From NCBI GenBank assembly GCA_016748015.1, contig JAAOMT010000097.1, positions 124,001 to 188,000 on the forward strand: a stretch of DNA of 64,000 bases, in the 5' to 3' direction. Numbering within the stretch: position 1 is the first letter of the stretch; each line of letters opens with the position of its first letter. Positions 13,903-62,500 of the stretch are shown here, one piece after another. A model generated the notes under the pieces. That model did no database searches. It saw nothing but the letters and a program-made list of their open reading frames with translations, and was not told where the DNA came from. This DNA is from Geosiphon pyriformis uo1 (taxonomy: Eukaryota; Fungi; Glomeromycota). A program made the translations under genes and the position numbers.

Positions 13903-16900
13903 TTTTTTTTTTTTTTTTTTTTTACATTTTTAACAAATGAGGTCCAAACGTGACCTAGTGCTATACATCATACAAATGATCTAAATTAAATGCGAATCAT
14001 GCGCTTTCTATACGTGACCAGCCACTTGGGCCAGTCAGAACTACACTATACATCTATATGCACAAAAACTGGATCTCCAATATCTGAAAAAAATGGACAA
14101 AACTTACAAAGCCTGAAACCAACTCCAAAAGCCTCAGCCACCCCCAGCAATCTGATCACACCAGCCGAAAACACCATAGGCAAACCAGAAACTGAAGCAG
14201 GAGCAGAGCCATCACGCGGAATCAAACTGTGCTTTTCCATAAACGCTCGGTGTCTGGCCCGAACTAACCAAACATCATCCCGAAATGCTAGACAAAACTC
14301 ACACACAAAGCTCACAATCCTCTTAGCACCCTCCTTAGAATCTTTAAAGACCGAGACAGACTCACAAAACCATTCATCGAAAACAAAGCCCTTACACAGA
14401 GCAACACCAACTCCAACCTCAGAAACACAAGAAGCCAAGGCCTGTAAGACACATGAAGAAGAGCGAGAAAGACCAGAAAGAGCCTCTTAAGCTGAAGCAT
14501 GTGTGCCTAACAAACGAGCATGGCCAATGGCATTCTGAGGACACGAAAAGACATGATCCGAGGTCTTAATGTCACCACAAAACAGACAGACCACACTGGA
14601 GTATCTCCTATTATATAAACGCTTGTGCACAGCAACAGAAAGCCGATGATGAAGAGCCTTCATAAAGTAAGTATGACAGCCTGCCATGCGCATACTGGTA
14701 AAACTAGATGCCAAGTGAGAATCAGGGTGCCACACTATAGAAGACTTAGACCAATTGATATCAGCATACAAACTAACATCCACAACACGAGAACCCACTC
14801 CAATCTCCCAACGAGCTCAATGAACTAACTGGAAAACATCACGAACAAAGTGTCTAGAATTACCAGAAACTGCCGTACTATCAGCACATAGAAAATGTTC
14901 ACTGACTAAATGAGGTAGGTGCCAAGCAGAGAGAGCAGCACTTTTGGCAAGCGCATCAGCATGTTCATTGCCTGAGACACCTGAATGATCTTTCACCTTA
15001 ACCCAATTCACATCCAAATTCTTTTGATGAATGATGGTGGCAATGTGACAATGCTCGATCCAACAGTGGTTCCTGAAATCCAGACAAACCAGCAAAGACT
15101 TTGACCTACATGCATCCAAAGCAGTCTGGCTATTTGAGAACAAGTCAATCAAACGAGAAAAAAGAACACACTCAAGGGCCAAAGCTATGGCTTGCAGTTC
15201 TGTTAGAGTAGAAGAAACCAAACCAGACACCCCAACACCCAAACCCAAGTTAATGTCCTCAAAAAAAATGGCAGCACCTGCTCTCATGTCAACAGTGCCC
15301 AGACCAGAAAGAGATCCATCTGTATACAGAGAAAAGCGGGCAGCATCAATGGTCGGCAAAGTGTCATGAATCACACCAAAATCATGAGAAAGACAAACAT
15401 CAGACACAGCATGACCATCCACCAAAGAAGAACTTGAGGAGAGAGGCACAATGCTACCAAGAAAGCGAACAGAAAGTTTAAACCAGAAAGGGACTGGACC
15501 ATGAGAGTCCAGCCTCTTCTAACACTTGAAAGTCCCCCAACTGAAAACATCACCATTATGGTCATGAAGCTGTTTCACAAAAGCAATTCCATAACGCCTA
15601 AGCGAAGAGATGCACTTGAAAAAACAGGATTCACCAAGAACCAAAGACATAGGAGTACTATACTGACGACGAAAAGCACAAGCTAGAGGGCCACCCAAAG
15701 ACAAATCACACCCAGAAAAAATGCAAATCACACCCGCCAAAAAATTATCCGAGGGACTGATACCAACACGAACCGGAAACAACAAGGGATGACGAGGATG
15801 CCAGCTGAGAACCTGGAGGTCATAAAACTTATAAGAAAACAAGTAACCCAAGACACCAGTAGAATTTGCAAAAGCAATAACGGAGGCCGATTTACTCTCA
15901 GCCTGGATCTGTTCGAAAGTTTTTAAATTGTACAAAGAGGGGTGATGAAGTGCATTACTGGGAAAATCATGTGGCAATCCAGACTTGGACTTTAAGACCT
16001 TGCATACTAAAGCATCCCATTTACTACAAACACCAACAGAAACAAAACTGAACTGAGTCCTGTAGCTGATGATAGGGAAAAGAACTGCAGACACCAAATA
16101 TGCACACTGTTTGTCTGAAATCACTTTTCTCAAAACAAAATTCACAAAAAACTGTACATCAGCTTGAGGTTTAGCCAAGCTAGGCTTTAAAAGACTCTTA
16201 AAAGACAAAAAAATACCCAAATAGTGATGAGATTCCCCTCTCTTGGCAATGGAAATAAGCGCATCACTGATAGTTAAATAAGGATCCAGCACCTGGCAAT
16301 TGATGGAGATGGTCACCGTTTTGTCATTGTTTACAGAAATATTGTTAAATCTAAAAAACTCATTAACAACATCAAGAATGCATTGTGTAGCAGCCTGGCT
16401 GCTACCAACCCAAATAGTATCATCAACAAAAGTGCCAGCAGCAAGAAATGAAGACAGCCCAGCTTGAGGATCCATCTGGCCAGTTCTTGATATGAAATGA
16501 GAATTCAACCTGTAGCTATACACACTATCCTGTCTCTTGACCTTACACAAAAGTGAATCATAAAAAATACGTCAGAGAAGAGGTGAAAAAACTTCTCCCT
16601 GATCCAGCCCATCATGGACACAATACCCATCAGTCAAGCCAAAGTCAGTCATCACTCTGTTGACGCGACCATTGTGAATACTGCCAAAAAATCTAATAAA
16701 CCTGTCACACATTTTGATCCTGACTAGACTCCTCCTAAGATGTTTCCAACCAACTGAGTCATAAGCCTTGCGCATGTCCTGTAAAACCAGCCAAAGTTCA
16801 CGGTTCTTTTCCAAGGCATCCTCAACCACAGAACCGATAGCAAAAATGGGAGATTACATTGTCGTACCCTTCAAAACTGAAAAATTGTCCCTACGAAGAA

Positions 16901-19900
16901 CATTAAAAGTGCTGCAAGCCAGAGAGATTCTATCTGAAAAGATCTTGGAGAGAATCTTGCAGGCCATTTTAATTAAAGCTATAGGATGGGTGTTTGTGAG
17001 AACTCCCTCCCATTCATATGGTTTAGGAATCATCGAAACCCAAGCTTCTCTCCAAGGCCCAGGGACCGACTCGCCAACCAAACAGAAATTCAAGAACACC
17101 AAAAGCATATCCAAAACAGATTTGTCACAATGTTTCCATAATTTGTTGGAGATACCAGAAAGACCAGCCGCTTTTCCATCAAAAAAATCCTTGACAACAG
17201 CTGACAACTCATCAAAACTAATCAAACACATGACATCAGAGAAAGCACCATCAAACACGTAATCCAGAGGCCGATATTGACAAACCCAATCCTCAGACAA
17301 GTCAGACACCACCTCACGTTTTCTGGTCCATCCCTCCATAATTTTGTCCACCTTAGACTTAACCAAAACAGGCTCTAAAATCAACTCATCTTCTACAACC
17401 AAATGATCCAGGACCACCTTGCGAAAAGGATGCTCCAAAACACTCCTAATGGTGTGACCCTTGTTCAGCTCAAAACTCTCTATCCTCTTACCAATAGCCT
17501 GCTTGATTGAGGATTCTTCGGCGTGCTTGGATTCCACTAATTTGAATGAGTGGTATGATTTTCTTGCTTTGGCCAGCGCAGAACGAATAAGATCAAAATT
17601 AGAATCTGAAAGAAACAGAGACTTAACCACTGATGCACCAGGGGAGTTGAATCTGTGCCACACCTCCAACAAAGAAGCAAAACCATCACTAGAAGCCAAA
17701 TACGAAGTCTTGACCAACTTAGAAACCAGCAGCTCCAGCTTGTGAAACCTAGAAAAAGTCTTGGTAAACACACCATCAAAACCTTTGAACCATTTTTTCT
17801 TAAATGTACCACCTGCTGAAAGAACCATAATCTTGCGAAAAATGTCCCACATAGTATCCATATCTGAAAATCTTACTGCCACACCAAAAGCATCTGAGAA
17901 CATAGAAACATTAGCAGCTGAGGCATCCTTGAACTCCAACCACTTAGCTTTATTGGCACTTTTGACATCAAACTTCCAACGGTCTTTATTCGCTTGCTTG
18001 CAAAGAGAATTCAAATGTGTATCCAAGAGCCTGCCCAAACCCAAATCCACTGAAACAGCTTGATGGTCTGTGTCAAAATGCTCACTGACATTCAAAACTT
18101 CATGACGCACTATTGCATTGACAAGACTTGAGGAGACAAACACGTAATCAATTGTTTTCTTAACACCCCTAAAATTTTCCCAAGTGGGCATTTTTGCAGC
18201 CAGGCTACCAACTAAAGAATTGACCAGACCCAAATCAAAGCATCTTTTGAAACTTGCACTTTTATGAGAGCCGTCTTCATTAAAATCGCCACCGAGAATG
18301 ATGAAAGAAGATTTGTTGACAGCTTTCACAATAAGAGAATTGATTTCACCAGCCTGAGAGAACTGAACCACCGAAGAAGCACCAGCATAAAGCCCCAAAA
18401 TTGACACAGAAAGTTTACCCTTGAAAAGTAATTTAATGGAAAGGAGCCGACCAGGCACCTCAAAAATCTTGCACACATGATGAGCCAAAGAAACGTCCAT
18501 GATAACAGCAACACCCACACCTAAGTGACCAGAGTTCAAACCAGAAGAGAACACTTAGACACCATCAAACTTGTCTGCAATCCATGGACGAACCTTACTT
18601 TTTAATTTCGTTTCAGTAATGATAGAGACCAAATTGTTCATTTCCTTATGCCACCTAATAATGTCCTCTTGCTTAGCGAGATTGTTCATGTCCCTGATAT
18701 TGCACGTAGTAACTTTCCAGACTAAACTGCTCATTGAGTGAGGGGTAGAGACACCAAAAGCGCACCTATACTATCCATTTTGGCCAAAAGGCCCAGAACC
18801 GTCTCCATTAGACACTTCATGCTGTCTTCCAGCTTAGACACTAAAGACACATCAAAAGACACCACTCCCGCGACATTCCCACCACTAGTGGACACACCTG
18901 AACCCTCACTCATCACTACATCTGCCCCTTAATCCTGTAATGAAAAAGTTACCAACAGCTGACATCCAGGGCTAGGCTGGGGAACCATTGGCCCAAGTGC
19001 ATCCAACCTCTTAGCCAGCTTACCAACTTGCTCCGCGAGGCTGGCGAGACTGCGCTCAAGAGCAGTGAACCTATCATTGACTTCCATCACAACCGGTTGG
19101 AACGGCTTCATCTCCGAAGAGGAGCCATTATTCACCACAACGTTCTGACCAGAAAGGGGGAGCGAAAAGCACCCGCGAGCAACCTTTGCCCAAGAGAGAC
19201 CACCAAAAGAGACCAGATGGGCAACTGGAGCCAAGTGTTTGGCATAGATGATTGCTAGCCTGCTTTTATCTGTATCCGAAAAAACTCTACACAGCAAACT
19301 ACCAGAAGATAATTTCCTACCAACTGCACAACCCAATGACGTGTGACCCAATTTCTCACACTTGGTGTATTTAGCAGAAATGAGACGAGACCAGTGGAGA
19401 TTGGTGTTCCTGAGTACTGGTGTGGTTTCCACAGCAGCATCCAATGATTCAGCAGAGTCGAAACAAACAACAGCACATCTGGCCTGAGCATACGTAACAG
19501 AATGATGATCAATGACGCATGTTTTCCCACCCACAGATCTAACAAAGTCCCAGATATCATGAGCAGTGGTCCCTATCGGCAATGTGTAAAGCAGTGCTCT
19601 ATGTTGGTCTCTTACATCCCACACTTCCTTGTCTGAATCAGCCCTAGCCATACATACAGCATTTTTCCCGATTAAGATGGACCACTCAGCTGTGACCAAA
19701 TCAGCCTGATCCGATCATTCGAATTCCACCATTGCCTTCTGCCACAGCCCGATTAACTGCATCTTGATTGCCTTAATAACTCCAAATTCAGATAGCGCAG
19801 TGCACACAGCCTCAACCGATGTTCCAATTGGAATTTCTTTCATGACCACAGCCCAATCTGAGTGACCAGCTGATCTTTTAAGATTGGTGTTTACCATAAT

Positions 19901-20677
19901 ATTTGCACCAGTAGCCTTTTCAGTGGCTTTCATTAGATCTGATTCGGAAGTGAATGTTGCTCTGATGATCCCTAAGAATTTTGAGAGGGTAGACACCCCC
20001 CCAAAACCATTAATTCCAGAAAATAAACTCCTGATCTTCTTGAGCTTTTCCTGGGCCGAATTTCCTTCTACTGCTTTCAGATCCAAATTCAAAGCAAATG
20101 ACTTTCTAATCGAAACATTGACCAGGTTCTTAAGAGGAGGGGGAAGCACCAGAGGGGCATCCAGAAGAACATCATCATTATCATTGTTATCCAAGAAGTC
20201 GATCTTTCCCAAAGGTTTTCTCAATGCTTTCCTAGTTGTCAACCGCAAACCTTTCGGCATTTGATTCAAATCTCTACCAACGAGTGCACCATCTTCACCA
20301 TAATCGAAACTTGTCTCCTCAACAAGACATTTCTCTTCCATATCAACACTGTCAGATTCTGTGGTATTACCAGTCTTCAAACCCCATGAATGACCACTTT
20401 GCACCTTAGCAGAACCCTCTTCAGCATCAGCATTGTCCTCAAGAACACCACCTCTTCTCTTTTTTCTTGACAGAACAGTCTTGAAACCACCCTCAGAGCC
20501 AGAACTTTTAACCATCTGTTTCATAACAGCAATACTAGAGCCAACAACAGCCTCATAATCAAGCAGAAATAGTTTGGATTTATCATACTGAATGGTAAAA
20601 AACTTCTTCCAAAAAACTTTTGACTCTTTTTTTTAGAATTTATGGAGGAACGAGAGAAAGAAGTTTTTTTCCTATTT
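13903..20677 (-). mobile_element. Near full-length but inactivated LINE copy B: ORF1 (about 20524-18731, CCHC-like knuckle) and ORF2 (about 18734-14046: APE endonuclease, RT, RNase H, C-terminal zinc motif), 3' poly(A)
   Basis: ILGGDFNE, IDYVFVS and DTDHQAV (APE); LQDMRKAYDSV, GLDQGEVFSPLL and FVDDTIW (RT); LYTDGS..TELQAI..KVKDHSGVSGNEHADALA (RNase H); CLFCGD..DHVFSC. Poly-T at 13903-13923. Several premature stops. Confidence 0.96.
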
Positions 20678-21835: not shown

Positions 21836-21954
21836 AAATTACGGCACTCTGTATTCCCGCGTGGTCCCCCACCGCAGTACTGACAGAGCCATCAGTGGCT
21901 TAACTTCGGAGATCGGACGGGTTCCGGTGCTTTTCACTGTGTATGGCCGTAATT
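21836..21954 (-). rRNA. 5S rRNA gene, dispersed single copy
   Basis: Reverse complement AATTACGGCCATAC..AGCACCGGAACCCGTCCGATCTCCGAAGTTAAGC..GTACTGCGGTGGGGGACCACGCGGGAATAC..GTGCCGTAATTT is about 119 nt with paired termini and ends in a T-run (Pol III terminator). Confidence 0.97.
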
Positions 21955-28205: not shown

Positions 28206-29532
28206 ATCGAGAAAAAAAAAAGAAAAAGAGAATCAACATAAATTTTCTTCCAAAAATATATTCTAAAGTGTATTATGATTTTAATAAAAAAATAAATTGA
28301 ATTTATCTTTCTTTGAATTCAAAATTTTAATGCATATGATGGCTAAACCTTATCATCAGATTGAACTTATAATTGTAATTTTTGATTAAAATTTATATAA
28401 AGAAATACAACCGCCCGTTAAAAAGATCCGTATTCTAAACGCAATACAGAAACTTTCAAGTTCCGTACTTGGGGTATACAGTATATACTTAAATCCCTAA
28501 TCGGTAGGATTGGAAAAAAATCCTATGATTAGACCACTTATTTATTGTCTTAAATGTTTTTTTACCCAAGAAAATCTTATAAATCCTTGCATAATTTATC
28601 GAAAATACTTTTAATCCCTTTAGAATTATGATTAATTAGGGAAATACGACTGAATCATAATCTATAATGTATCTCAATCAATCCCTTACATTTTCCATCT
28701 GCTAAGGGATCATAATGCATAATACGCATGATAATGAATCCTTGCTCAGACAGTTGATTGAAAATTTGATAAAGAAAGGCCCTATTTCGAAACTTATTTC
28801 CTCTTCACAAACTCCCCTTTTTAAATTCTAAAGTTAATTGGTTCTTCTTGTTTGTTCAATTTTTAATAAAACCCTTGCCCCAGTAAAAATATTCTATTTT
28901 TGTAAAAAAAGGGAAAGCAAAAAACGTGAGAAATAAAAAAATATATAACCTGTTTATTTCATTATTAGGTTTATTATTATTAAATTTAGGTACCATTATG
29001 CCCACGTTAGACTGTCACGTTCCGGATCCTACAGATTGCTTGAATCTCTTTTCGTCTAGGGTTTTAATTCGCATGCTTCGGAAGAACTTCCTGTCAATTG
29101 TGTTTTTTTTTAAACCTTGATTCATTTACCGTGGTACTAATGACGATTATGATAAGTCTTGGATGACACTACCAAGAAAGGAAAATAACCTACCGAGAAA
29201 ACAAAAGAGCTGCAGCAGTTTCAAAAACAAAAAGAAATGCATGCATCATGCAGTAGGATGCAGATTAACAACACTTGCACCAATTTTGAAGTAGAATGAA
29301 TAAAGTTTTGATTAGTTAAGAAGAAGAAGACTGAACTTAAGAAGTCCAGTTGCTTCCCAGCATTGATGAAATCATTATTTAAGCAGGATCATTGAAAACT
29401 TTCCCATCAACCTTTCCTTCCCATCTTTTTTAATCTCTTTATAATTTCGTCTTGACTCTTTTAAGAGAAAAGAACAATATTAAATACACGCACGCGTTAA
29501 TTTCCTTTATTACTGATATCAATTTAAAAATA

Positions 29533-30861
29533 ATGCCAAAAATCAAATCTGAAAAAAGGGAATTCAATAATTTCGTTTCTATGCCATTGGTATTTCTTCA
29601 ACCGGCTCCAATCCCGGCGGTAGATCCAACTTCATCCATGATCTCGACTAGAAATAATGACTTAAACTCATCAACCGCAGCGCTAACTGATTCAAATGGT
29701 GTTTTCATTCATCAACAAGACCGTCTAAGCTCAGAAGATATAATGCTACTTCAGGATCCACCTTACAAACTTACCCTCCCGATTAACGAATTATTGGCAC
29801 CCGCTAAAAGAACGCGTAAAATCAACAAGAAATTGGCACAAACTGGAGGCCTGACCGAGGAAGATGAGAAACCACCTCGACCACAAAATGGTTGGGTAAT
29901 CTTTCGTAAAGATTATGAGGCAAAATTACGTGAATTGAATCCGGAAGAGACTTACAAAATTCAAGATATCTCTAAAACAGCTGGTCCTGTTTGGAGAGAT
30001 CAATCCGAAAAAGTTAAAAAATATTTCGAGGTGTTACAACGCGTCGCTCTAGAAAAACACAAGGCAATGTATCCAAATTACAAATATATGCCGAAAAAGA
30101 AGGATCAATCAGCCAACACAACATCCGTGACAGCACCAAAAAATGAAAAGAATTGGGTTTTTCGTGAAATGGCAAATCGTCAACCACCATATCTTTATGA
30201 ACACACAAGTGGTGAAGAATGTCGAATGCAAATCAATCCGGATACACCAACACCTTCATCTTTGGTAAATTCACCACGCGAATATTCTTCATCTGGAACT
30301 TTTTCTCCGACACCACCAAACTCCCCGGCTGAAGATCCATTTGATATTTATAACGCGTCAAATAATTGTCATGCTCCCTCGTTTTACTTTGAAGACTACC
30401 ATTATGCTACCTCTGCCAACACTAGTATCCCGACATCAAATCAATCAACCGCTTCTGTTAGCTGTACACCATCACCTAACTATTATTCAGCAATACCTTC
30501 GACAAACATATTTCCTCCCATTTCGAATTTGTTGCCTTCTTATTTAAATAATCAAAATACCACGGTTCCTTCTTCATTTGATTCTTCATTCAATTCCGGG
30601 ATCAATGAAAAATTTACAGATTGTTCGCTCAGCATACTTGCCAATGGCCTTGGAATTAACTTGAATCCGATGAGTTCGACATCTTTATTTCAAGGTTCTA
30701 CCATGACAACACTTTCTGGCGACTCGAACACACAATGTTTTGACGCTACCTCGCCATCGAATTCCTTCAAATTGGAGGAAATTCCATTGGATCGGTACGA
30801 CTTTTCAAGTGTCTCTCAACAATTCAATGAGGTTAATTTCACTGCCACTACCACCACTACC

Positions 30862-30892
<31 letters not shown>

Positions 30893-31611
30893 TAAATTCC
30901 AACAATGGAAACACTACGATCTTTGATAATGGTAACAATCATCAAGAAAATTTCACACCCAATATGGTTAATGTCGATGGAATGGCCCTTAATTACCAAT
31001 CTGGGAAAAACTATAACGAAACTTTGGAAACATTTGGAGGTGATATCTCTATGCTTTTCAACCAACAATCGAGTGGGAATTTCAATTTCTCCAACTCCGA
31101 ACCTTATAAGGGGAATAAATTTACAGATAATTTCAGTAGCATAAAGCTTTCAGATGATTTTGTATTTCAAGAAGATTTCACGGATGGCGATTGCATTGGG
31201 GTTGATGGGATGAATTCAAACGACCTCTTTTGTCATCTTCAACAACAGCCCCTTGATTTGAATCTTCATCAGGAATCACCAAAGATTGAATCTGGCAGAA
31301 TAGCTAGTACATTTAGTCCTGAAAATGTGACAATTCCGAGCCCAACTAAACTTGAATTTCCATTCGCAACTATTGTGACCGTGACCACCACAACTACAAA
31401 TGCTTCATTTACTGTTAAAGATAAACATAAGGAAATTTCATCATGTATACCTGATAGTTGCTCGACAACTCCTTTTGTTCCTCCCCATCTTCCCGAATTT
31501 TTAATGAACAATTATGATACAACCTTTGCTGCTGGAAATTTCTCTGGCGTTTCGTTTGAAGAGTTATTTGGTGAAAATTGTGACTTGCCGTCACCACCTT
31601 TTTCTTTCTAA
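29533..31611 (+). CDS. MATA-type HMG-box transcription factor, intronless, long low-complexity S/N/acidic tail
   Basis: PPRPQNGWVIFRKDY..ISKTAGPVWRDQSEKVKKYFEVLQRVALEKHKAMYPNYKYMPKK, preceded by PPYKLTLPINELL; single open frame of about 690 codons. Confidence 0.93.
30862..30891 (+). repeat. (AAC)10 microsatellite encoding poly-Asn in the HMG protein
   Basis: Directly visible in the sequence. Confidence 0.95.
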
Positions 31612-46898: not shown

Positions 46899-47442
46899 CG
46901 TTTAATTGAAGTGAATACAAAGCAGCCTGGGAAGCTTAAAAAAAGGTTTCTAATAGATCGCCAACCTGCTGACCGAAAAAGGCTCTTTCACAGAAATTTA
47001 ACGATCGTCACAAACAGAAAATAATTTCACTCTTAAAATTTGATTCCTTACATCCGTTTATTATTTTAATGTACAGGGGTGATGGATCATGAAGAATTGG
47101 AAGAAAAAATATTCTCAGTGCAATATAGAAACAGTTTATATGTCGAGATGTTCAGCTGCTAAATATCAAATGATAAAAATAACTTTTTTTATCAGTTTAA
47201 TTTTAATATCCTTCTATTGCATAACCTTGAACTGAAATAAAATGTCCTTGGGAGAGAATAACAATAACGGCATCTCTTTAAGCTTGATAACAATTTATGT
47301 CTGTTTTTCCACCGAGATATCAAACCAGAAATTTCGTCTATAGTTAGAACCCCACATAGGAAAGGATACAATTTTGATGATAAAAACTCGGCGATTGTGA
47401 CGATTGGGATCGAGGTTAGGTTATTATTGGCCTTACCTTATA

Positions 47443-48072
47443 TCACGAATTATCAGAGGTCACCGTGGGGATTTCTCCACCTTCTGCTGATGCGGCGGCA
47501 TTTTCAGTAATTTCCGCCTCATGAACTAGCGAACTTTCTTTGACAGGTGACGAGTTGTGAGCTTGTGTGGCAATTGGATTTGTATGGGGAATGGTTTCAG
47601 GAGAAGGGTGTTCAGAGCCCACTGGAACCTGGGTTTTTCCCGCTTTTGAAAGAGCATAATCTCCAGAATCAAAATATTTTCGTTCCTTAAAAGAAAAGAA
47701 AGCAGTTACAATCATATAGATTAATAGTGGGAAAGAAAATAAGAAAACGTCGGTTGAAAGGTGAATTTCTCGACTTAAAAGCTAATTAGGTAGATAGCCG
47801 ATTGATCAACTAAATCAAATATCCTCAAAATTACAAGAGTTAAAGATTTTATTCAAGGCTGACAAGTTGACAAATATATACCTTCAAATTTCGATTTATT
47901 ATATCCTTTCCCGCTGGGAGTCGCCCATAAAGATTGAAGAGCTTTTTCTCTTCTTCGGTTAATTTCTAAGGAGAAAAAGCTATTATAAAGCAATCCATTT
48001 CTATTTTTCGAGAAAAAGTTTACTAAAAACACTCACCGCTAAGTCAACCTTATTTTGTTTTGCAGGCACCAT
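47443..48072 (-). CDS. IGO1: Endosulfine/ARPP-19 (Igo1-like) PP2A-B55 inhibitor
   Basis: KLTEEEKKLFNLYGRLP..ERKYFDSGDYALSKAG. Confidence 0.93.
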
Positions 48073-48482
48073 AGTAAACTATTGAAAAATAATAGTATTT
48101 AATCTTTGGTTTTTAAACGAAGGATAAACTAGTCAAAGAATGAAGACTGTGGAAAAATAATATCCAGGTAAAAAACCTCTTGGAAAGTGGTTCTTGCTAG
48201 CTATATTCGATACTAAGACCATTTGTGGCCACTTGTGTTCCCACCTTTGCCAATTTTGAGAAATTTCACCCGTCATCTAGAAAGTTTAACAATCTTTGGG
48301 ATATCCAACTTAACTTCTTTTGTTCTTGCAGTCTGCAATGATAATCATTGATTGTTCCAAAGATCACTTAGCTGCAGTGTTCATATTCTCACGTGTTGAT
48401 CTCAGCCTTATTTCCGACTGGGTACGCAATAATTGTAAGCAAAAAAGGTACCATAATTAAAGTTGAACAGTAGTTTATACAA

Positions 48483-48493
48483 GTATATATAAA
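48483..48493 (+). promoter_or_regulatory. TATA-like box upstream of the U12 snRNA gene
   Basis: gtatatataaa lies about 20-30 nt upstream of the inferred snRNA start. Confidence 0.5.
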
Positions 48494-48512
48494 GCAATAG
48501 AGGTTACCATTA

Positions 48513-48683
48513 ATTGCCTCAAATTAATGAGTAAGGATAATATAGGATTTGGGTGATTCCAGTCCATTCAGTAGCTATTGCTCTGAAGTAATCACCAAAT
48601 ATTTGGAGGAATATAGATCGGTCTCGTGGAGTTCGTTTACACTACTTCTGTAAACTTGTTCTCCAGTGTTGCTGGTCTTCCTT
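48513..48683 (+). ncRNA. RNU12: U12 minor-spliceosomal snRNA
   Basis: 5' ATTGCCTCAAATTAATGAGTAAGGATAATA resembles the conserved U12 5' end (UGCCUUAAACU.AUGAGUAAGGAAAA), including branch-pairing GTAAGGA at 48531-48537. Hairpins ggatttgg/ccagtcc and ttcagtagc/gctctgaa; Sm-like aatatttgg; long 3' stem (agga/tcct, agatcggt/gctggtct, tggag/ctcca, gtttaca/tgtaaac) capped by loop CTACTTC. Confidence 0.92.
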
Positions 48684-49912
48684 TTACACTCCGTGGTTTA
48701 ATTTAGAACCTTTATCAGTTTTTGTATTATCTAAGTTGATGTTCTATGAAATGACCTAAGTAGCGAATTATCTGAATTTTTAACAACCGAGTATTCCCAA
48801 ACGGTTTCTTTTGTTACTAGGAAAAAGGAAACACTGAACTTGAACTCCAATTTTCGGCCTTTGTCGATCTGCAATTTTAGAATTGACAATGGGAATTTAT
48901 GTAGTTTTAATTAAATTACAAATTGAATTACAATGAAAGTGAAAGAACTATAAATTATTTTGTGATTGAATGCCATGTTTGAGAACAATTTTATAAATGG
49001 GAGTTTTCTTAAAACTGAACATTATTTTGCATTCCTTTCAAGCTATGGTAGCTACTGAATCGAACTCAATTGGCTTGCATTTAAATGAAAAATATTCAAT
49101 TTAGCAAGAAAATAAAAGTGGAAGTCTTATTTCCAATTCGATTCTTCATATCACCGAGAGATCTTAGCAGACTAACGAAAGATGGTAGTCTTTAATATCG
49201 AGATATTGATACCGAGTTCTTCAACTTAATTATATACATTTACCAAAACCATATCGATCGAGATAAAGTTCCATCTAAAATTTATGAAATTTGCCTTATT
49301 CAAATTGAGTTATCAGTCGTAATAGGATAGCGCATCATAAAAGATATAAAGCTTTGTTTGACAACCCGAAAGGATTAACGATGACGATCTCAACTTGGGC
49401 GGCTACGATTGGTCCGAGAATGATGTGATTTTAGCTTCGTACTCCTTACAAACTCGAAAAAGTTTCTAATATACCTTAGAATAGTCAAAACGACATTTTT
49501 TGGTATTTTCGGGATTTTCTTTCCTGCGAATTCCAGTTGTCTGAGTTTTATTCCCGCTCTGCAAACCCGACTGACTGGGTGTTTCTGTCTTGAGATGCTT
49601 AGGGGTAATTTAAAAGCATCTATCCCAATTGGTTTGGGATGTCAAATAGGTGTCAAAGCGACATGACACATCTTTATCCTAAGTGTCGCCCACTGGCAGA
49701 GCACTTGGAGAAGTTTCCTTCCCCAAATATAGGATAAAGAAAGGGAAATGCGGAATGCTCAGGGTAATTCTCCAGGGCAGAAAATCTTTGGAGTAGTCAT
49801 CTCTTTAAAGAAAACAAAGATCAATAGAGAATTCCTTTCCTTGAGAAAACCATTAACTATAGTTAATTGAAAAATTGTTACTTACACCTCCAAAAGTTTA
49901 TAATGAAAATCG

Positions 49913-52092
49913 TCATTGATCAAACATGCTCTCAAAAAAATCATCCTCAGTCATTGAGGGGCAAAAGCCGGACTGAAAACTTTGTCCCTCATTAGTAAAT
50001 GTCTCAAGACTCGCATCCTTTGGCAAATTATGTGTTCCAAAACGCTCAGAGGCTACCACACCGTGATATAAAGGAGATTGTCTTATTAAAGTTTTGTTGA
50101 ACTGACCATCTTGATGATTAAAAATGGCTTCGAACTCATCAGAATTTGTCCATTGATCCTCATCTTCCTTATCAGGAACCGTTTGACATGACGAAGGTGT
50201 AATATCTTGAACTTCATATATTAAGCCACTGTGCTTATTTGAATCGGCTTTAAATTGTCTTTCATCACCAAAGCCAAGTTTATAATGGGAATCCATCTCG
50301 TCCATCTCTTCCCAGAAATTTTTATCATGCTCTAAATCTGAATCGTTATTTCCTGCGAAACAATTAATATAATCCATGTATTCTAAATCTCCTCTTTTAT
50401 CCGCCATTTCAAAGATTTCTTCATCATGATCTACTGTTGTATTTGAGTCGAATAATTCATTTGTAGAGTCGTCAAAACGTTGAATCCCTGGTATATCTTC
50501 CGGATAAAAAAAGCTGATTGGAGATGGGTTTAAATTCTGGGCAGCCTTCTTAGGATTTTGTGGCGATGCCTTTAAAGATTCGCTGTCGTCAAACTTGCAG
50601 TTCTGAAATTCATCCTCGCTTGAAGACTATAGATGTTTGAAAATTATCTGAATAAGACGATTCTTTCAAAAAAAAATATGAAGTTTAATACCTCTTGAAA
50701 TAATATTGCCGGTATTTTGAGATTTTTGGCAGCAGCATATAAGCCATCAGCAAGAATTATCTTTGTCTGTTGTTGCGAGCTGACCAAATTTTCTTCGTGA
50801 GGTATCGGAAAATTTAAATCAACCCTCTTTCGAATCCGCTGAAAAGCATAGGAATCATCATAAATGCTATGAAAATAAAATATATTGCATTTTTATTTTT
50901 TTCACGTTACCTCTAGATATTGATCTGCCTTATATTGAAAATCTTCATTAACACTTGTACAAATTATCCGCGTCAAAGAATTCGAAATGTTTTGAACGTA
51001 TTGTGTAATAGTTTCAAGCTTCTGCAAATTTGGTAAGAAATAATGAGAAAATTTGACAGTAAAAGACAAAATCATTGCAATGATAAATTTATATTACAGT
51101 TTGATAATCTGGAGAAAAAATTAAAGGATATCTTTCAACCAACAAATTTCGCATAATACTTCGAAAAGCCGTATCAATCGCACATATTTCGAATGAAGCT
51201 GTCTCCTTACTATTCCTCATTAACTCGTGGCGCAGCGATGCTACGTGTGTAAAATTTTGCTTGTCAAGCATAATAGAAAACGCTTTTGGTTGAAGAAATA
51301 CACGAATGCTGCAGAAAAGGATATCTATTGCAACCCAATTGAAAACAAAGGTCAATTTATTTAAGTTCCCGAAAGGTCTTCGATCGGATGAGTATGGTAA
51401 GGAACAATTACCAGACGCGTGTATCCAGTATTCTATGAAATAAATACTGAGTTGTTATTTGACGGCTAGATGTTGAATTTGAGACGAGATTGATAGGGTG
51501 AACAATGTTTCACCTACCTTTATTAAATTGTCGTGATGGTTCAGCAACGGATAACATGGTGGAGAACCCAAATTTCCGCCATATCTTATGAAAATTAAAA
51601 TTTCATCAATCCATTCCTTGATTCTATAATAAATCTTCCAAATATTCAACGTATATTTACCTCTGGTCGGCAAAGTCGTTTTAAAATGATGTGTTCTCTT
51701 TTAGAGCTCAAACTATACAATTTACCGTCAATTCTATTTACAAAGTGATTATATACAAAAAGACTGGCTAAGGAAGATCATATTTCAAAGATCCCGTAGA
51801 CTTTCTTTTAAGCTCTAAAGACGAAAGAGGATATATTAAGACGAAGTTTCCCGTCGTATAGAACAACGTCCATTTTATTCATGTCGTCTTCACTCAGTTC
51901 GCGCATGTTTGGGAGTAACTGCACGTTATACTCGACTTGTTGGAGGCAACTCACTTTCAGTATGTGAAAGCTTGGATTCGAGTTGGTTGCTACCCCAATT
52001 TTCAAGATCTCGGGTGTTAAAGAAATAGAGGACGAGCGTTCAACTATATGGTTTGGAAGCGTTTGAGTAGAGACGCTTCTATTAAGCAACAT
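49913..52092 (-). CDS. Candidate TopoVIB-like meiotic DSB subunit (TOP6BL/MTOPVIB/Rec102-type transducer) with acidic disordered C-tail; contains two AT-AC introns and a 2-nt exon
   Basis: Spliced reading ..MDVVLYDGKLRLN|FVNRID|E|IWRKFGFSTM..KLTFVFNWVAID|VASLRHELM..IDTAFRSIMRNLLVERYPLIFSPDYQT|KLETITQYVQNISNSLTRIICTSVNEDFQYKA resembles the W..(Y/F)G motif and the C-terminal transducer helices of TopoVIB-like proteins. Confidence 0.62.
51247..51324 (-). other. U12-type AT-AC intron (78 nt, in-frame, stop-free)
   Basis: Donor ATATCCTTTT, branch TGCTTGAC, acceptor ACAC; length is a multiple of 3. Confidence 0.75.
51745..51834 (-). other. U12-type AT-AC intron (90 nt)
   Basis: Donor ATATCCTCTT, branch TTCCTTAGC, acceptor TCAC; removal bypasses the stop ending ORF 51808-52092. 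Confidence 0.8.
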
Positions 52093-53926
52093 GACTACCG
52101 TGTCAAAAGGAAGAATAACGCATCAACATATTTTTAAACAACAGATCACTTCTGCATGATTGTGACGTCATAGCGGTGACACAAAAAAATGCGTTCCCGA
52201 GACCTCTGAATTTTTTTCTAATATGAATTGAGACAATTGTTTTTTCTAATTTTATTAGGCACCAACTATGCCAGAGAAAGCATGTCGGAAGTTGGTAATG
52301 ACGAGTGGGTATGTGAAGAACAGCCCGCTTCGGTAGTTCGGTTTGCTTTGTTCAATAAGATGCTTTGCTTTTCTCTTGTTCGCTAGATGATAATTCCAAA
52401 AAAGAAAAGTTTTTGCAACATAATTCAGCAAGAAGCTGTTACCTAAATGCTAGTCTGTCCTGATCCTACCACACTTGAGTTCTTTTAGGAGTATATTGCC
52501 AACACATCGAGTCTACAAATATTGGAACATACTTATGATCAAATATTTCGAAATAAATTAAAGAAAATGAAAAAAAAACAATGAATCTATATAATTGAAT
52601 GAGATTCTTTCTAACTCTCTGCTCCCTTTTGATAAGAAGCAAGGGATGCTTGCCATTAATTGCAAGCTGATTTACAACTCACTAAGAACTGGCACATCTG
52701 AGGCAGCTGATTTATGATTTTAGATGAGTACATTTATTTTTAGGGTTATTAGAATACCGAAATTTTACTGCTGGATCTGAAGGGTATTTAAAAGTCTTAA
52801 GAAGAGTTGAATTTTTACTCCTTTTACTTTGATTCGATCTCGCCAAGAAGGTTAAATAAAAGTTAAAATCTTAAAATTTTAGACGTCATCTGGGATAAAA
52901 TGTTATCCACAATCGGGCGCACCGTCACTTTTCAAAAATTTATTGAAAATAAAATTTTATAATTATAAAAGTTTAGACAATTGCAAAAATAATTAATAAA
53001 AAACAAAATAATTTTAAAACAATTGTACCATTTTTAAATATACATTTAAAATTTGTTTTATTTCAGATTTTAAAATTCACATTATTAACAATTAATTGAA
53101 ATTATTTATTGTAAAAAAAGGTTATTTTGTAATTATATAATTAATAAAAATATTAAAAAACCAATTTTGCAGCAATAAATTTTATATAAAAACTATTTAT
53201 AAAACATTTAACTAAATTTGTAATATTAATGTCTTAAAATTATAAATTTATTATCAAGAACAATAAAAAAAAATTAAATTTTAAATTTTTAAATTTTAAA
53301 CAAATAATTTTAATAAATAATATTATTTATATATAATATATTTATTATTGTGTAAATTTTATTTTTTAAACATAATACTAATAATTAATTTGTAAAAGCT
53401 AAATTATTTATTATAAATTTTTAAATTTATGCAATTTTTTTTATTTTTTTTTATTTGCTTTTATAAAATATGATTCTATTATTATTTATTTGAATTTTTT
53501 GACTTTGACAATATAAATTTATGTTAACTAATTAAAAACTAAATAAATTTTTTTGTTGCTTTTTTGATAAATAATAACAGCAAATACTTATTTACATATT
53601 TTATATATAAATCTTGCTTATTTTATTTTTTAATTTGTTGTATAATTCTTTAACTGTTTTATTCCAATATAACATATTTGTAGTAACAATATTTTATTTA
53701 ATGCATTTATGTTAATAATTTATTTAAATCCCCAAGTGATTTTTTATTTCCACCAAACATTCGGTAAGTTTTTCTAGTAACATATGTACAATTATTTATG
53801 GGTTTAATAGTGAGGATATGGCATAAATTGATTGGCTAAAGTGAAGATCTACAATGTCGGAGATTGAGATCACATGACCTAACACTATTTGTAGGGTGTC
53901 TGCGAGAACTCGTTCGCGTCATAGCC

Positions 53927-56099: not shown

Positions 56100-57468
56100 T
56101 CGCTTTGTGAGGTCTGAATTTTTCATTAGTCGGAATCTTCAAATTGCGGATAGATTGTAACAGGTCAATGATAGGCCATACTAAGGATTGCTATGTAACA
56201 CCTATTATTTCCCGTAGGGTCAAGGCTCTATCAAGCAATGGCCGGAGAAGATCCCCCGAGGCCATCTTCGTCTCTATTACAATCCCACAATTCCGGCAAT
56301 TGTACATTTTGGACCCTATGATTCTTTGGATGTTGCCACATTGACTACAAGTCTAACAATATACCTTTTGTTTTTCATATTTATTGTATTATATATTTTA
56401 TTCTTTTGATTGTAAGATCACATGTGTTCTTGTGTGGATTGGGCCCTTGTTATTTTTTCGATGTGAAAGGCCATAGTACATGTTTATCCTTACAAACAAA
56501 GAATGAAAAATCCTATAAAAATGATATAAAACAATTGTATCGATGTGCATATATATATATATATTCCTGGAGTGTGAAGGCAAGATAAATAGAAGTGATT
56601 CCAAGGTAATTCGGTAAAAATTCTGAGACTGAAAAGAAAGATTCTATGTGGATGCACCTTGTTGTCACTGTGCATTACGTTTAATAACTTTTTTCGCGCA
56701 ACCAATGCTTGATCAATCGCTTCGTCCGTGATGTTGGCAGGAGCTGAGCCTAAGCAACTTCTTAAGAGCATGCCAAGAGAGAGACCATGGCTCTGGAAAA
56801 TTTTCTTTCACCCCAAATAGCTGAAACATCATCAAAAAAAAGACATTTTTGTTGAAACGTCATAGGTTTTAACCATCCTCTTTGCGTGGCCATCTTGTAT
56901 CATAATGATGCGACGCCTTTTGCTCCATGTCACCACAATATTAAATGGAAATCTCCCCAGACCTATCCATTGCTACAATAGCTGCTTCTGAGAGTGGTCG
57001 AGATAAATTTTGACTAGCGTGCGGTTGAGGATGCCTTCCGTCTTCTGGCGTTTGCCACGGGCTGCTGTTGCCTTCCCTTGTGCTTTTTTGTTCTTGCGTT
57101 CTCTTCAGTAGCAAGAAGCTCTTCCCTGAATGCGGCAATTGAAGACTGTGTTGACGGCAAGAATATCTTGAAGAATTGTGCCCTTCAAAGGTTGCATCAC
57201 CGAAGAGGACTACAAGTTTTGCGGAATGGAGGGGGAAAATATATTGGAAAAGGTCAAAGGTAAAGTGGGAGAGTCAAGCACAGTGGGTAATGGCAACCTC
57301 CAAGACAGCACCATGGTTTGATCGTTCCCAGTAGGGTTTTAAACCCTTAGCGCTTGAAGTTGACGCCAGAACCGATATTCCTGATGAACTCACTTGTGGC
57401 GAAAAGTTGTTCTTGTCGCTTAAGAACCTCTTTTTGCTTTGCACTAGAGACATGAACAGAGGTAGCAT
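56100..57468 (-). mobile_element. Internally deleted Fanzor/IS607-type TnpB-like pseudogene
   Basis: Frameshifted fragments in TnpB order: STSSAKGLKPYW/NDQTMVLSWRLPLPT; VKIYLDHSQKQLL*QWIGLGRFPFNIVV; PANITDEAIDQALVARKK; zinc ribbon TCSQCGNIQRIIGSKMYNCRNCGIVI; RuvC-III-like RDEDG/RGIF/LRPLLDRAL. Element ends are uncertain. Confidence 0.8.
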
Positions 57469-57631: not shown

Positions 57632-60781
<3,150 letters not shown>

Positions 60782-61903: not shown

Positions 61904-62500
61904 TCAATGCCAAAATCCAGCTCTTTCGTTAGGCTCTCTGACGGGCCATGTTATCCAATTCCACTTGACTCCTCCACGAATTTTTTTTGGTTTACCCCCA
62001 TCGACAGGCACACCTAAGAAATTAAACGAATAGAAATTTTTGTTTTCTTGAAATTTGGAAAAGTTCCTTTAAGAGATTTTCGCTTACCATTCCAATATTT
62101 TATACCCCATGCTTTTCCGTGGTTTATAGTCTGTTAAGGAATCGGATGATAATATATGCGCAATAACTATAAAATATAGATCAAAGAGGAAGTGAATAGG
62201 ACTAACCTTTTTCTTGAATCTAATTTTTGTTACTTCAATATATTCCCGTCGGAAACCCTTAGCCATCCACTTGGTAGGCAGCTGTATTGATTCAAAGCAA
62301 AAGTTGCGGGTTAAGAATTCTCGACCTCGAGTTACGCTATCAAGTCCACGATTCACAGTAACATTCACACCAACCACTTTTTGTCCGATACCAAAATAAG
62401 GGAAGACATTTAACAATTGATATAAATTTTTACCCCTTTGTGACTCTACAACGACGGGAAGTTCAGAACTGTATATCAATTTCCTTGCTATGCTCGTCAT
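61904..62500 (-). CDS. Probable mitochondrial ribosomal protein mS34-like
   Basis: GKNLYQLLNVFPYFGIGQKV..YIEVTKIRF..HGKAWGIKYWNG..KKIRGGVKWNW. Confidence 0.65.

Follow-up and report, generated by a model that had tools for sequence, protein, structure and literature searches.

Does the early-diverging fungus Geosiphon pyriformis (Glomeromycotina) encode a U12 snRNA, and is the minor spliceosome at work in it? The question is raised by a short plus-strand locus in the stretch of 64,000 nucleotides of genomic DNA that we analysed (the window), where a first-pass annotation had read a U12 gene from sequence motifs, hidden in an apparently empty intergenic region, and had concluded that this fungus keeps a working minor spliceosome. 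The background of this claim, the loss of the minor spliceosome in Dikarya and its retention in early-diverging fungi, is already established. A previous study applied the same four Rfam minor-snRNA models to more than 3000 genomes; it found no convincing minor introns in Ascomycota and Basidiomycota, and reported 205 minor introns with canonical signals for Rhizophagus irregularis, together with orthologues of the 65K, 35K, 25K and 20K proteins (Larue & Roy 2023, PMC10639083). Minor snRNA genes have been found in other basal fungi as well (PMC11347168). R. irregularis belongs to the same subphylum, Glomeromycotina, whereas Geosiphon is placed in a different order, Archaeosporales. Geosiphon is not named in the main text or in one supplement of Larue & Roy 2023, which gives no gene structure, promoter or antisense overlap (PMC10639083).

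Results

Identification of the U12 snRNA gene

A scan of the entire window with Rfam 15 and its gathering thresholds yielded two matches, U12 and 5S rRNA. The U12 match (RF00007) spans positions 48514-48682 of the plus strand and positions 1-151 of the model and scores 55.1 bits (gathering score 53), with E values of 5e-8 for the window and 2.4e-8 for the 128 Mb genome; it is thus significant and of full length, in keeping with the U12 gene proposed from motifs. The same locus was the sole U12 match of the covariance model in the assembly (128.3 Mb, 792 contigs), in which the window corresponds to C457:124001-188000, and a DNA search of the assembly found no second U12 copy. When the stretch was folded alone, the minimum free energy (MFE) structure reproduced the hairpins and had a z-score of -3.28. 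The elements from which the first-pass annotation had read the gene (GTAAGGA, two small hairpins, an Sm-like site, a 3' stem-loop and an upstream TATA) are all in place (Table 1).

Table 1 Features of the U12 locus and its surroundings, and promoter geometry of snRNA genes in the same genome (window positions unless a contig is given; box and TATA positions are relative to the 5' end of the gene)
Feature	Position	Strand	Basis or remark
U12 snRNA gene	48513..48682	+	Rfam RF00007 full-length match; relatives-only model R1; single copy
USE-like box TACCATAATT	48449..48458	+	starts at -65; differs at one position from TCCCAYAATT, the snRNA box of the genome
TATA box TATATATAAA	48484..48493	+	-30; position like U6atac (-31) and U6c (-31)
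GUAAGGA, branch-site recognition sequence	48531..48537	+	invariant in 11/11 aligned U12 sequences
Stem-loops IIa and IIb (two small hairpins)	48545..48587	+	Rfam alignment, MFE folds
Sm site AAUAUUUGG	48598..48606	+	aligns to the Rfam Sm site AAUUUUUGa
Long 3' stem-loop (SLIII)	about 48608..48682	+	Rfam alignment; helices kept in relatives
5'-UTR exon of an endosulfine mRNA isoform	48508..48861	-	covers U12 antisense; spliced contigs
Endosulfine (ENSA/Igo1-type) coding exons	47446..48072	-	ATG 48072; Pfam PF04667
U12-type AT-AC intron, 90 nt	51745..51834	-	absent from RNA-derived contigs of runs X3 and X2
U4atac candidate	C513:8149-8280	-	43.7 bits, under the Rfam cut-off of 53
Promoters of eleven major Pol II snRNA genes	box -75 to -83; TATA -34 to -42		spacing 41-44 bp
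U6c promoter	box -63; TATA -31		spacing 32 bp
U11 promoter	box -68; TATA -37		spacing 31 bp
U4atac candidate promoter	box -65; TATA -35		spacing 30 bp
U6atac promoter	box -67; TATA -31		spacing 36 bp
U12 promoter (TACCATAATT, one mismatch)	box -65; TATA -30		spacing 35 bp

The Rfam score exceeds the gathering score by only 2 bits, and we therefore used an independent model built from relatives. A metagenome scan with a 22-base 5' motif, a pattern that shut out the human 5' form, yielded 15 contigs, 13 of which carry U12 genes above the Rfam threshold. From five distinct full-length relatives among them, with the window sequence excluded, we built the covariance model R1, and its only match in the window was 48514-48683 (39.2 bits, E about 1.6e-6). 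The window U12 and U12 genes elsewhere have 24 contiguous 5' bases in common: in the metagenome genes with the GCCUCAAA 5' variant (L025-L039) the 24-base 5' end is the same or nearly so. These genes share their architecture with the window U12, L037 being the closest, and are mostly 144-152 nt long, compared with about 170 nt for the window gene.

The base-paired structure is supported by covariation with the relatives. In an alignment of eight U12 sequences, 94.7% of the pair cells form standard pairs (a percentage inflated by the fitting of this alignment to the model structure), compared with 39-47% when the partners were slid by 1-3 columns. Both sides had changed in 22 of the 35 pairs, and the observed pair values were reached by none of 500 column shuffles. 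In SLIII, helices 3 to 6 are 86-98% paired across the relatives, and the number of double changes in them is large, 16 of 24 pairs being altered on both sides.

Motifs and structure of the U12 RNA

The 5' end of the RNA reads UUGCCUCAAAUUAAUGAGUAAGGA, and the plus strand from 48513 runs (A)UUGCCUCAAAUUAAUGAGUAAGGAUAAUA. The RNA may in fact begin with the A at 48513, and its 3' end may fall inside the TTTT at 48682-48685. With human and Arabidopsis U12 (RF00007) the RNA shares the 5' GCCU.AAA...AUGAGUAAGGA that includes the branch-site recognition sequence, stem-loops IIa and IIb (here at about 48545-48565 and 48567-48587), the Sm site and the long 3' stem-loop with its seven-base CUACUU-type loop. 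It is longer than the 151-position RF00007 model, with insertions in SLIIb and SLIII. At position 7 a C replaces the U of the usual CCUUA, and the resulting C-A mismatch costs the classic stem-loop I one of its pairs; the U-to-C change is common to all relatives, although the search pattern demanded it.

The Sm site and the apical loop of SLIII each depart by one base from the Rfam consensus. The sequence AAUAUUUGG sits where an Sm site (RAU3-6GR, between SLII and SLIII) is expected, but an A breaks the U run, the consensus being AAUUUUUG. The SLIII loop, CUACUUC at 48642-48648, is closed by a 7-bp stem (GUUUACA/UGUAAAC) and matches the canonical 65K-bound loop CUACUUU in six of seven bases, the last base being C where the consensus has U. 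This loop is expected to be the binding site of the 65K C-terminal RRM. The relatives have the Sm sites AAUUUCUGG, AAUUUUUGA and (C)UUUUUGC, and the loops CUCUUU or UCUCUUC where the window U12 has CUACUUC; judged from these sequences, both positions evidently vary within this U12 group. The one-base departures, which the first-pass annotation had suggested may be lineage-specific, lie inside the natural variation of the relatives.

Promoter architecture and choice of polymerase

For the promoter comparison, we took 22 snRNA genes of the genome (U1 x4, U2 x5, U4 x2, U5 x3, U6 x4, U11, U12, U4atac and U6atac) and aligned their flanks at the 5' ends. The flanks revealed a common architecture, a TCCCAYAATT box followed by a TATA box, and this pair stands upstream of U1, U2, U4, U5, U11, U4atac, U6atac and one U6 gene. 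The USE-type box is common to 15 snRNA genes besides U12, namely the eleven major Pol II genes, U11, U4atac, U6atac and U6c. U12 itself has TACCATAATT at -65 and TATATATA at -30. If up to one mismatch is allowed, the box is matched 11 times on the two strands of the window, that is at about 1e-4 per position and strand, and a match on the right strand within the right zone of 35 nt therefore has a chance of about 0.004. The U12 genes of the relatives are preceded by ACCCATAAT or CACCATAAT boxes at about -55 to -65; since these are like the box of the window gene, we regard its core ACCATAAT as a recurring natural variant.

The geometry of these promoters separates two groups. In the minor snRNA genes, the arrangement is about one helical turn shorter than in the major Pol II snRNA genes (Table 1). 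Plant snRNA genes likewise have two external elements, a USE (RTCCCACATCG) at about -70 and a TATA box at about -30; in their Pol III genes the two are one helical turn closer, and this one-turn difference decides the choice of polymerase (PMC9845283). The first seven bases of the box (TCCCACA) are the same, whereas the plant USE ends in TCG and the fungal box in ATT. Unlike the situation in plants, the short spacing (30-36 bp) is found in every one of the four fungal minor snRNA genes, among which U11, U12 and U4atac are of the Sm class.

The plant rule raises the possibility that the U12 gene is real, yet transcribed by RNA polymerase III in this fungus. Its USE/TATA geometry (35 bp) indeed resembles that of U6atac (36 bp) and U6c (32 bp) and differs from the 41-44 bp of the major Pol II genes, a difference of the kind that matters in plants (PMC9845283). 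Moreover, the gene has no internal T4 run, owing to its Sm site being AAUAUUUGG, and it ends in the TTTT at 48682-48685. However, the short spacing is also seen in U11 and U4atac, whose Sm sites include T5 and which lack a T run at their end, so that spacing alone is no sign of Pol III here. The T4 of U12 is short compared with the T7-T9 that follow U6 and U6atac, a T4 run is missing by chance from about 1 in 5 sequences of 169 nt and about 33% T (a rough estimate), and T runs are not avoided in the relatives. In the organisms studied so far, U12 is known as an Sm-class transcript of Pol II. Transcription of U12 by Pol III is thus unlikely, and RNA polymerase II is most likely the enzyme that transcribes this gene. 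We are similarly doubtful of the broader proposal that the short, U6-like geometry of the minor snRNA promoters marks a separate transcription class, with U12 as a Pol III product at its extreme.

An AGTGG(G/T)G-like box was also observed downstream of most Pol II snRNA genes in the genome. Two exact USE matches elsewhere in the window were considered and set aside. On the minus strand, at 62612-62568, the USE TCCCATAATT is followed 44 bp on by TATATAAT, which is Pol II snRNA-type spacing. We rejected a hidden small-RNA gene at this place: a coding exon begins about 30 nt after the expected start (62207-62500, minus strand, with an ATG at 62500 and 98 codons that lack a Pfam match), and none of the Rfam families fits. 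The exact USE at 56283 (+) has no TATA at the right distance and is probably due to chance.

An antisense endosulfine exon covers the gene

Assembled contigs of two public runs, X2 and X3, were placed on 47000-52900. Neither run is on record as RNA; we regard their contigs as RNA-derived because they are spliced. They reveal a minus-strand transcript with the pieces 48861-48508, 48417-48245, 48078-48037, 47965-47882 and 47685 onward, which encodes an endosulfine: PF04667, searched on the exons apart, gave 47.1 bits (cut-off 29.8) and 26.9 bits. As coding starts at the ATG at 48072, the first two pieces are 5'-UTR exons. Contig 7 of run X3 carries the minus-strand GT..AG joint 48417/48508, and a contig of run X2 covers 48585-48835. 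The intron 48418-48507 of this isoform contains the U12 promoter. The region described in the first-pass annotation as apparently empty and intergenic holds no coding sequence, but it is not empty, since the exon 48508-48861 spans the whole gene antisense. The depth figure of run X2 is 5.4 for the contig over 48585-48835 and 1060 for the coding exons; contig depths are poor measures, but with the upstream contig so far below the coding exons, the upstream exon may belong to a minor endosulfine isoform. The RNA contigs over U12 belong to this antisense 5'-UTR exon or are inseparable from it and, running about 180 nt beyond the 3' end of U12, are no demonstration of the snRNA itself.

This overlap suggests a reading in which the U12 likeness is a chance resemblance within the endosulfine 5'-UTR exon, and the minus-strand mRNA is the sole product of the region. 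The RNA contigs of the region, which a minus-strand GT..AG splice links to the endosulfine mRNA, agree with it. Chance is nevertheless an extremely improbable source of a match with a whole-genome E value of 2.4e-8, at a place picked by an independent model as well, with 24 contiguous 5' bases in common with U12 genes elsewhere, a structure backed by covariation and a snRNA-type promoter on the plus strand.

Other minor-spliceosome components in the genome

A working minor spliceosome requires partners for U12, and the genome search proposed for U11, U4atac, U6atac and 65K/RNPC3 found U11 and U6atac outright, U4atac below the threshold and a candidate for 65K. With the Rfam models, U11 scored 80.9 bits and U6atac 70.9 bits, both above the cut-off; the 5' end of U11 is UAAAAGGG, and U6atac carries AAGGAGAGA and a terminal T9. 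The U4atac candidate stays under its gathering score and would therefore be missed by threshold-based annotation (Table 1). About 17 bp form between its 5' region and U6atac, with a dG of -28.2 kcal/mol, a value reached by none of 1000 shuffles. In stem I, UGCCGAC of U4atac faces GUUGGCA of U6atac, whereas the Rfam consensus sequences are UGCUAAC and GUUAGCA; the difference amounts to a double change from A-U to G-C on two unlinked genes. Because of this pairing and the compensatory change in stem I, we take the U4atac candidate as real. For helix I, a 5-bp pairing between UUGCC of U12 and GGCAA of U6atac had a dG of -6.9, no improvement on shuffled sequences, of which 264 in 1000 reached this value.

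The search for minor-specific proteins was confined to 65K, 59K and 25K, out of a set that also comprises 48K, 35K, 31K and 20K. PDCD7/59K was detected with PF16021 (35.6 bits, cut-off 27) and an SNRNP25-type ubiquitin-like domain (25K) with PF18036 (44.3 bits, cut-off 22.8). There is no specific Pfam family for 65K/RNPC3, and we used as a lead the degenerate pattern G-R-M-[KR]-G-Q-A-F, which we take to be a 65K motif. The pattern had one exact match in the genome, and the reversed control had none. The two RRM exon pieces of this candidate, searched apart, had RBM40 (RNPC3/65K; 3egn, 5obn) as their best match, with E values of 9e-11 and 1e-5, and the C-terminal RRM of RBM40 outranked RBM41 and U1A.

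A spliced U12-type intron near the gene

An AT-AC intron with canonical U12-type signals lies 3 kb from the U12 gene. On the minus strand, from 51834 to 51745, it starts with ATATCCTC, has TTCCTTAG 24 nt before its 3' end and ends in AC. We computed its pairing with U12, U11 and U6atac: the branch site pairs with GUAAGGA of U12, which is complementary to UUCCUUAG of the intron. The intron is absent from the contigs of both runs (Table 1), and from its removal we conclude that minor splicing operates in this fungus. Together with U11, U6atac, the U4atac candidate and the genes for 65K, 59K and 25K, the spliced AT-AC intron supports the working minor spliceosome that the first-pass annotation had deduced from U12 alone. 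The deduction was correct, but it is not new for the subphylum, as the same has been published for R. irregularis. The evidence supports a complete and active minor spliceosome encoded in this genome, with U4atac as a sub-threshold member and 65K as a candidate.

The window also contains, at 59858-59952 (+), a candidate GT-AG U12-type intron of 95 nt, GTATCCTTG...TCCTTAATT...AG, which came from a motif scan. In addition, the intron that follows the exon 62207-62500 has TTCCTTAAC near its end.

Active U12-type splicing also bears on the question of whether the locus could be a decaying or silent U12 pseudogene, the working gene lying in unassembled sequence. The assembly may indeed be incomplete, the Rfam score is barely over the threshold, the USE box has one mismatch, and the RNA contigs at the locus cannot be attributed to U12 itself. 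On the other hand, neither the covariance model nor the DNA search brought up another U12-like sequence in the 128 Mb, the functional motifs of the locus are all intact and compensatory changes keep its stems. Its promoter elements occupy the same places as those of U11, U4atac and U6atac, other organisms also have the box variant ACCATAAT ahead of their U12 genes, and U12-type splicing is active. We therefore consider a pseudogene very unlikely.

Other features of the window

The 5S rRNA gene at 21836-21954 (-), with a score of 102 bits, stands alone and distant from any rDNA unit of the window. At 14817-20524 (-) there is a series of long ORFs (210-566 aa) that look repeat- or retroelement-like, and a 719-aa ORF at 29452-31611 (+) in part resembles an HMG box by eye.

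Discussion

The covariance models, the covariation with relatives and the promoter context together bear out the U12 reading of this locus, and on these grounds we conclude, with a probability of roughly 0.93, that the early-diverging fungus Geosiphon pyriformis (Glomeromycotina) has its single functional U12 snRNA gene at 48513/4-48682 (+). The locus is apparently functional and would be transcribed in its own right into a capped RNA, with the ends proposed above.

The following mechanism can be proposed. Transcription would start from a promoter external to the gene, with the USE-like box at -65 and the TATA box at -30. By homology with the U12 RNAs that have been studied, an Sm ring is predicted to bind the RNA at AAUAUUUGG and the C-terminal RRM of U11/U12-65K to bind the SLIII loop CUACUUC; 65K would then bridge via 59K to U11 and so form the U11/U12 di-snRNP. 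In U12-type introns, GUAAGGA would pair with a branch site of the UCCUUAAC type and leave the branch adenosine bulged out, and the 5' end of U12 would subsequently pair with U6atac in the catalytic core.

To summarize what this means for the organism, an unannotated but expected gene joins the parts list of a glomeromycote genome. With the spliced AT-AC intron as RNA evidence, a complete and working minor spliceosome is supported for a second order of Glomeromycotina, a deep-branching one, and this knowledge helps to mend gene models that contain AT-AC introns. For studies of how snRNA transcription evolved, the plant-like USE, with its distinct spacing in the minor snRNA genes, may hold modest interest.
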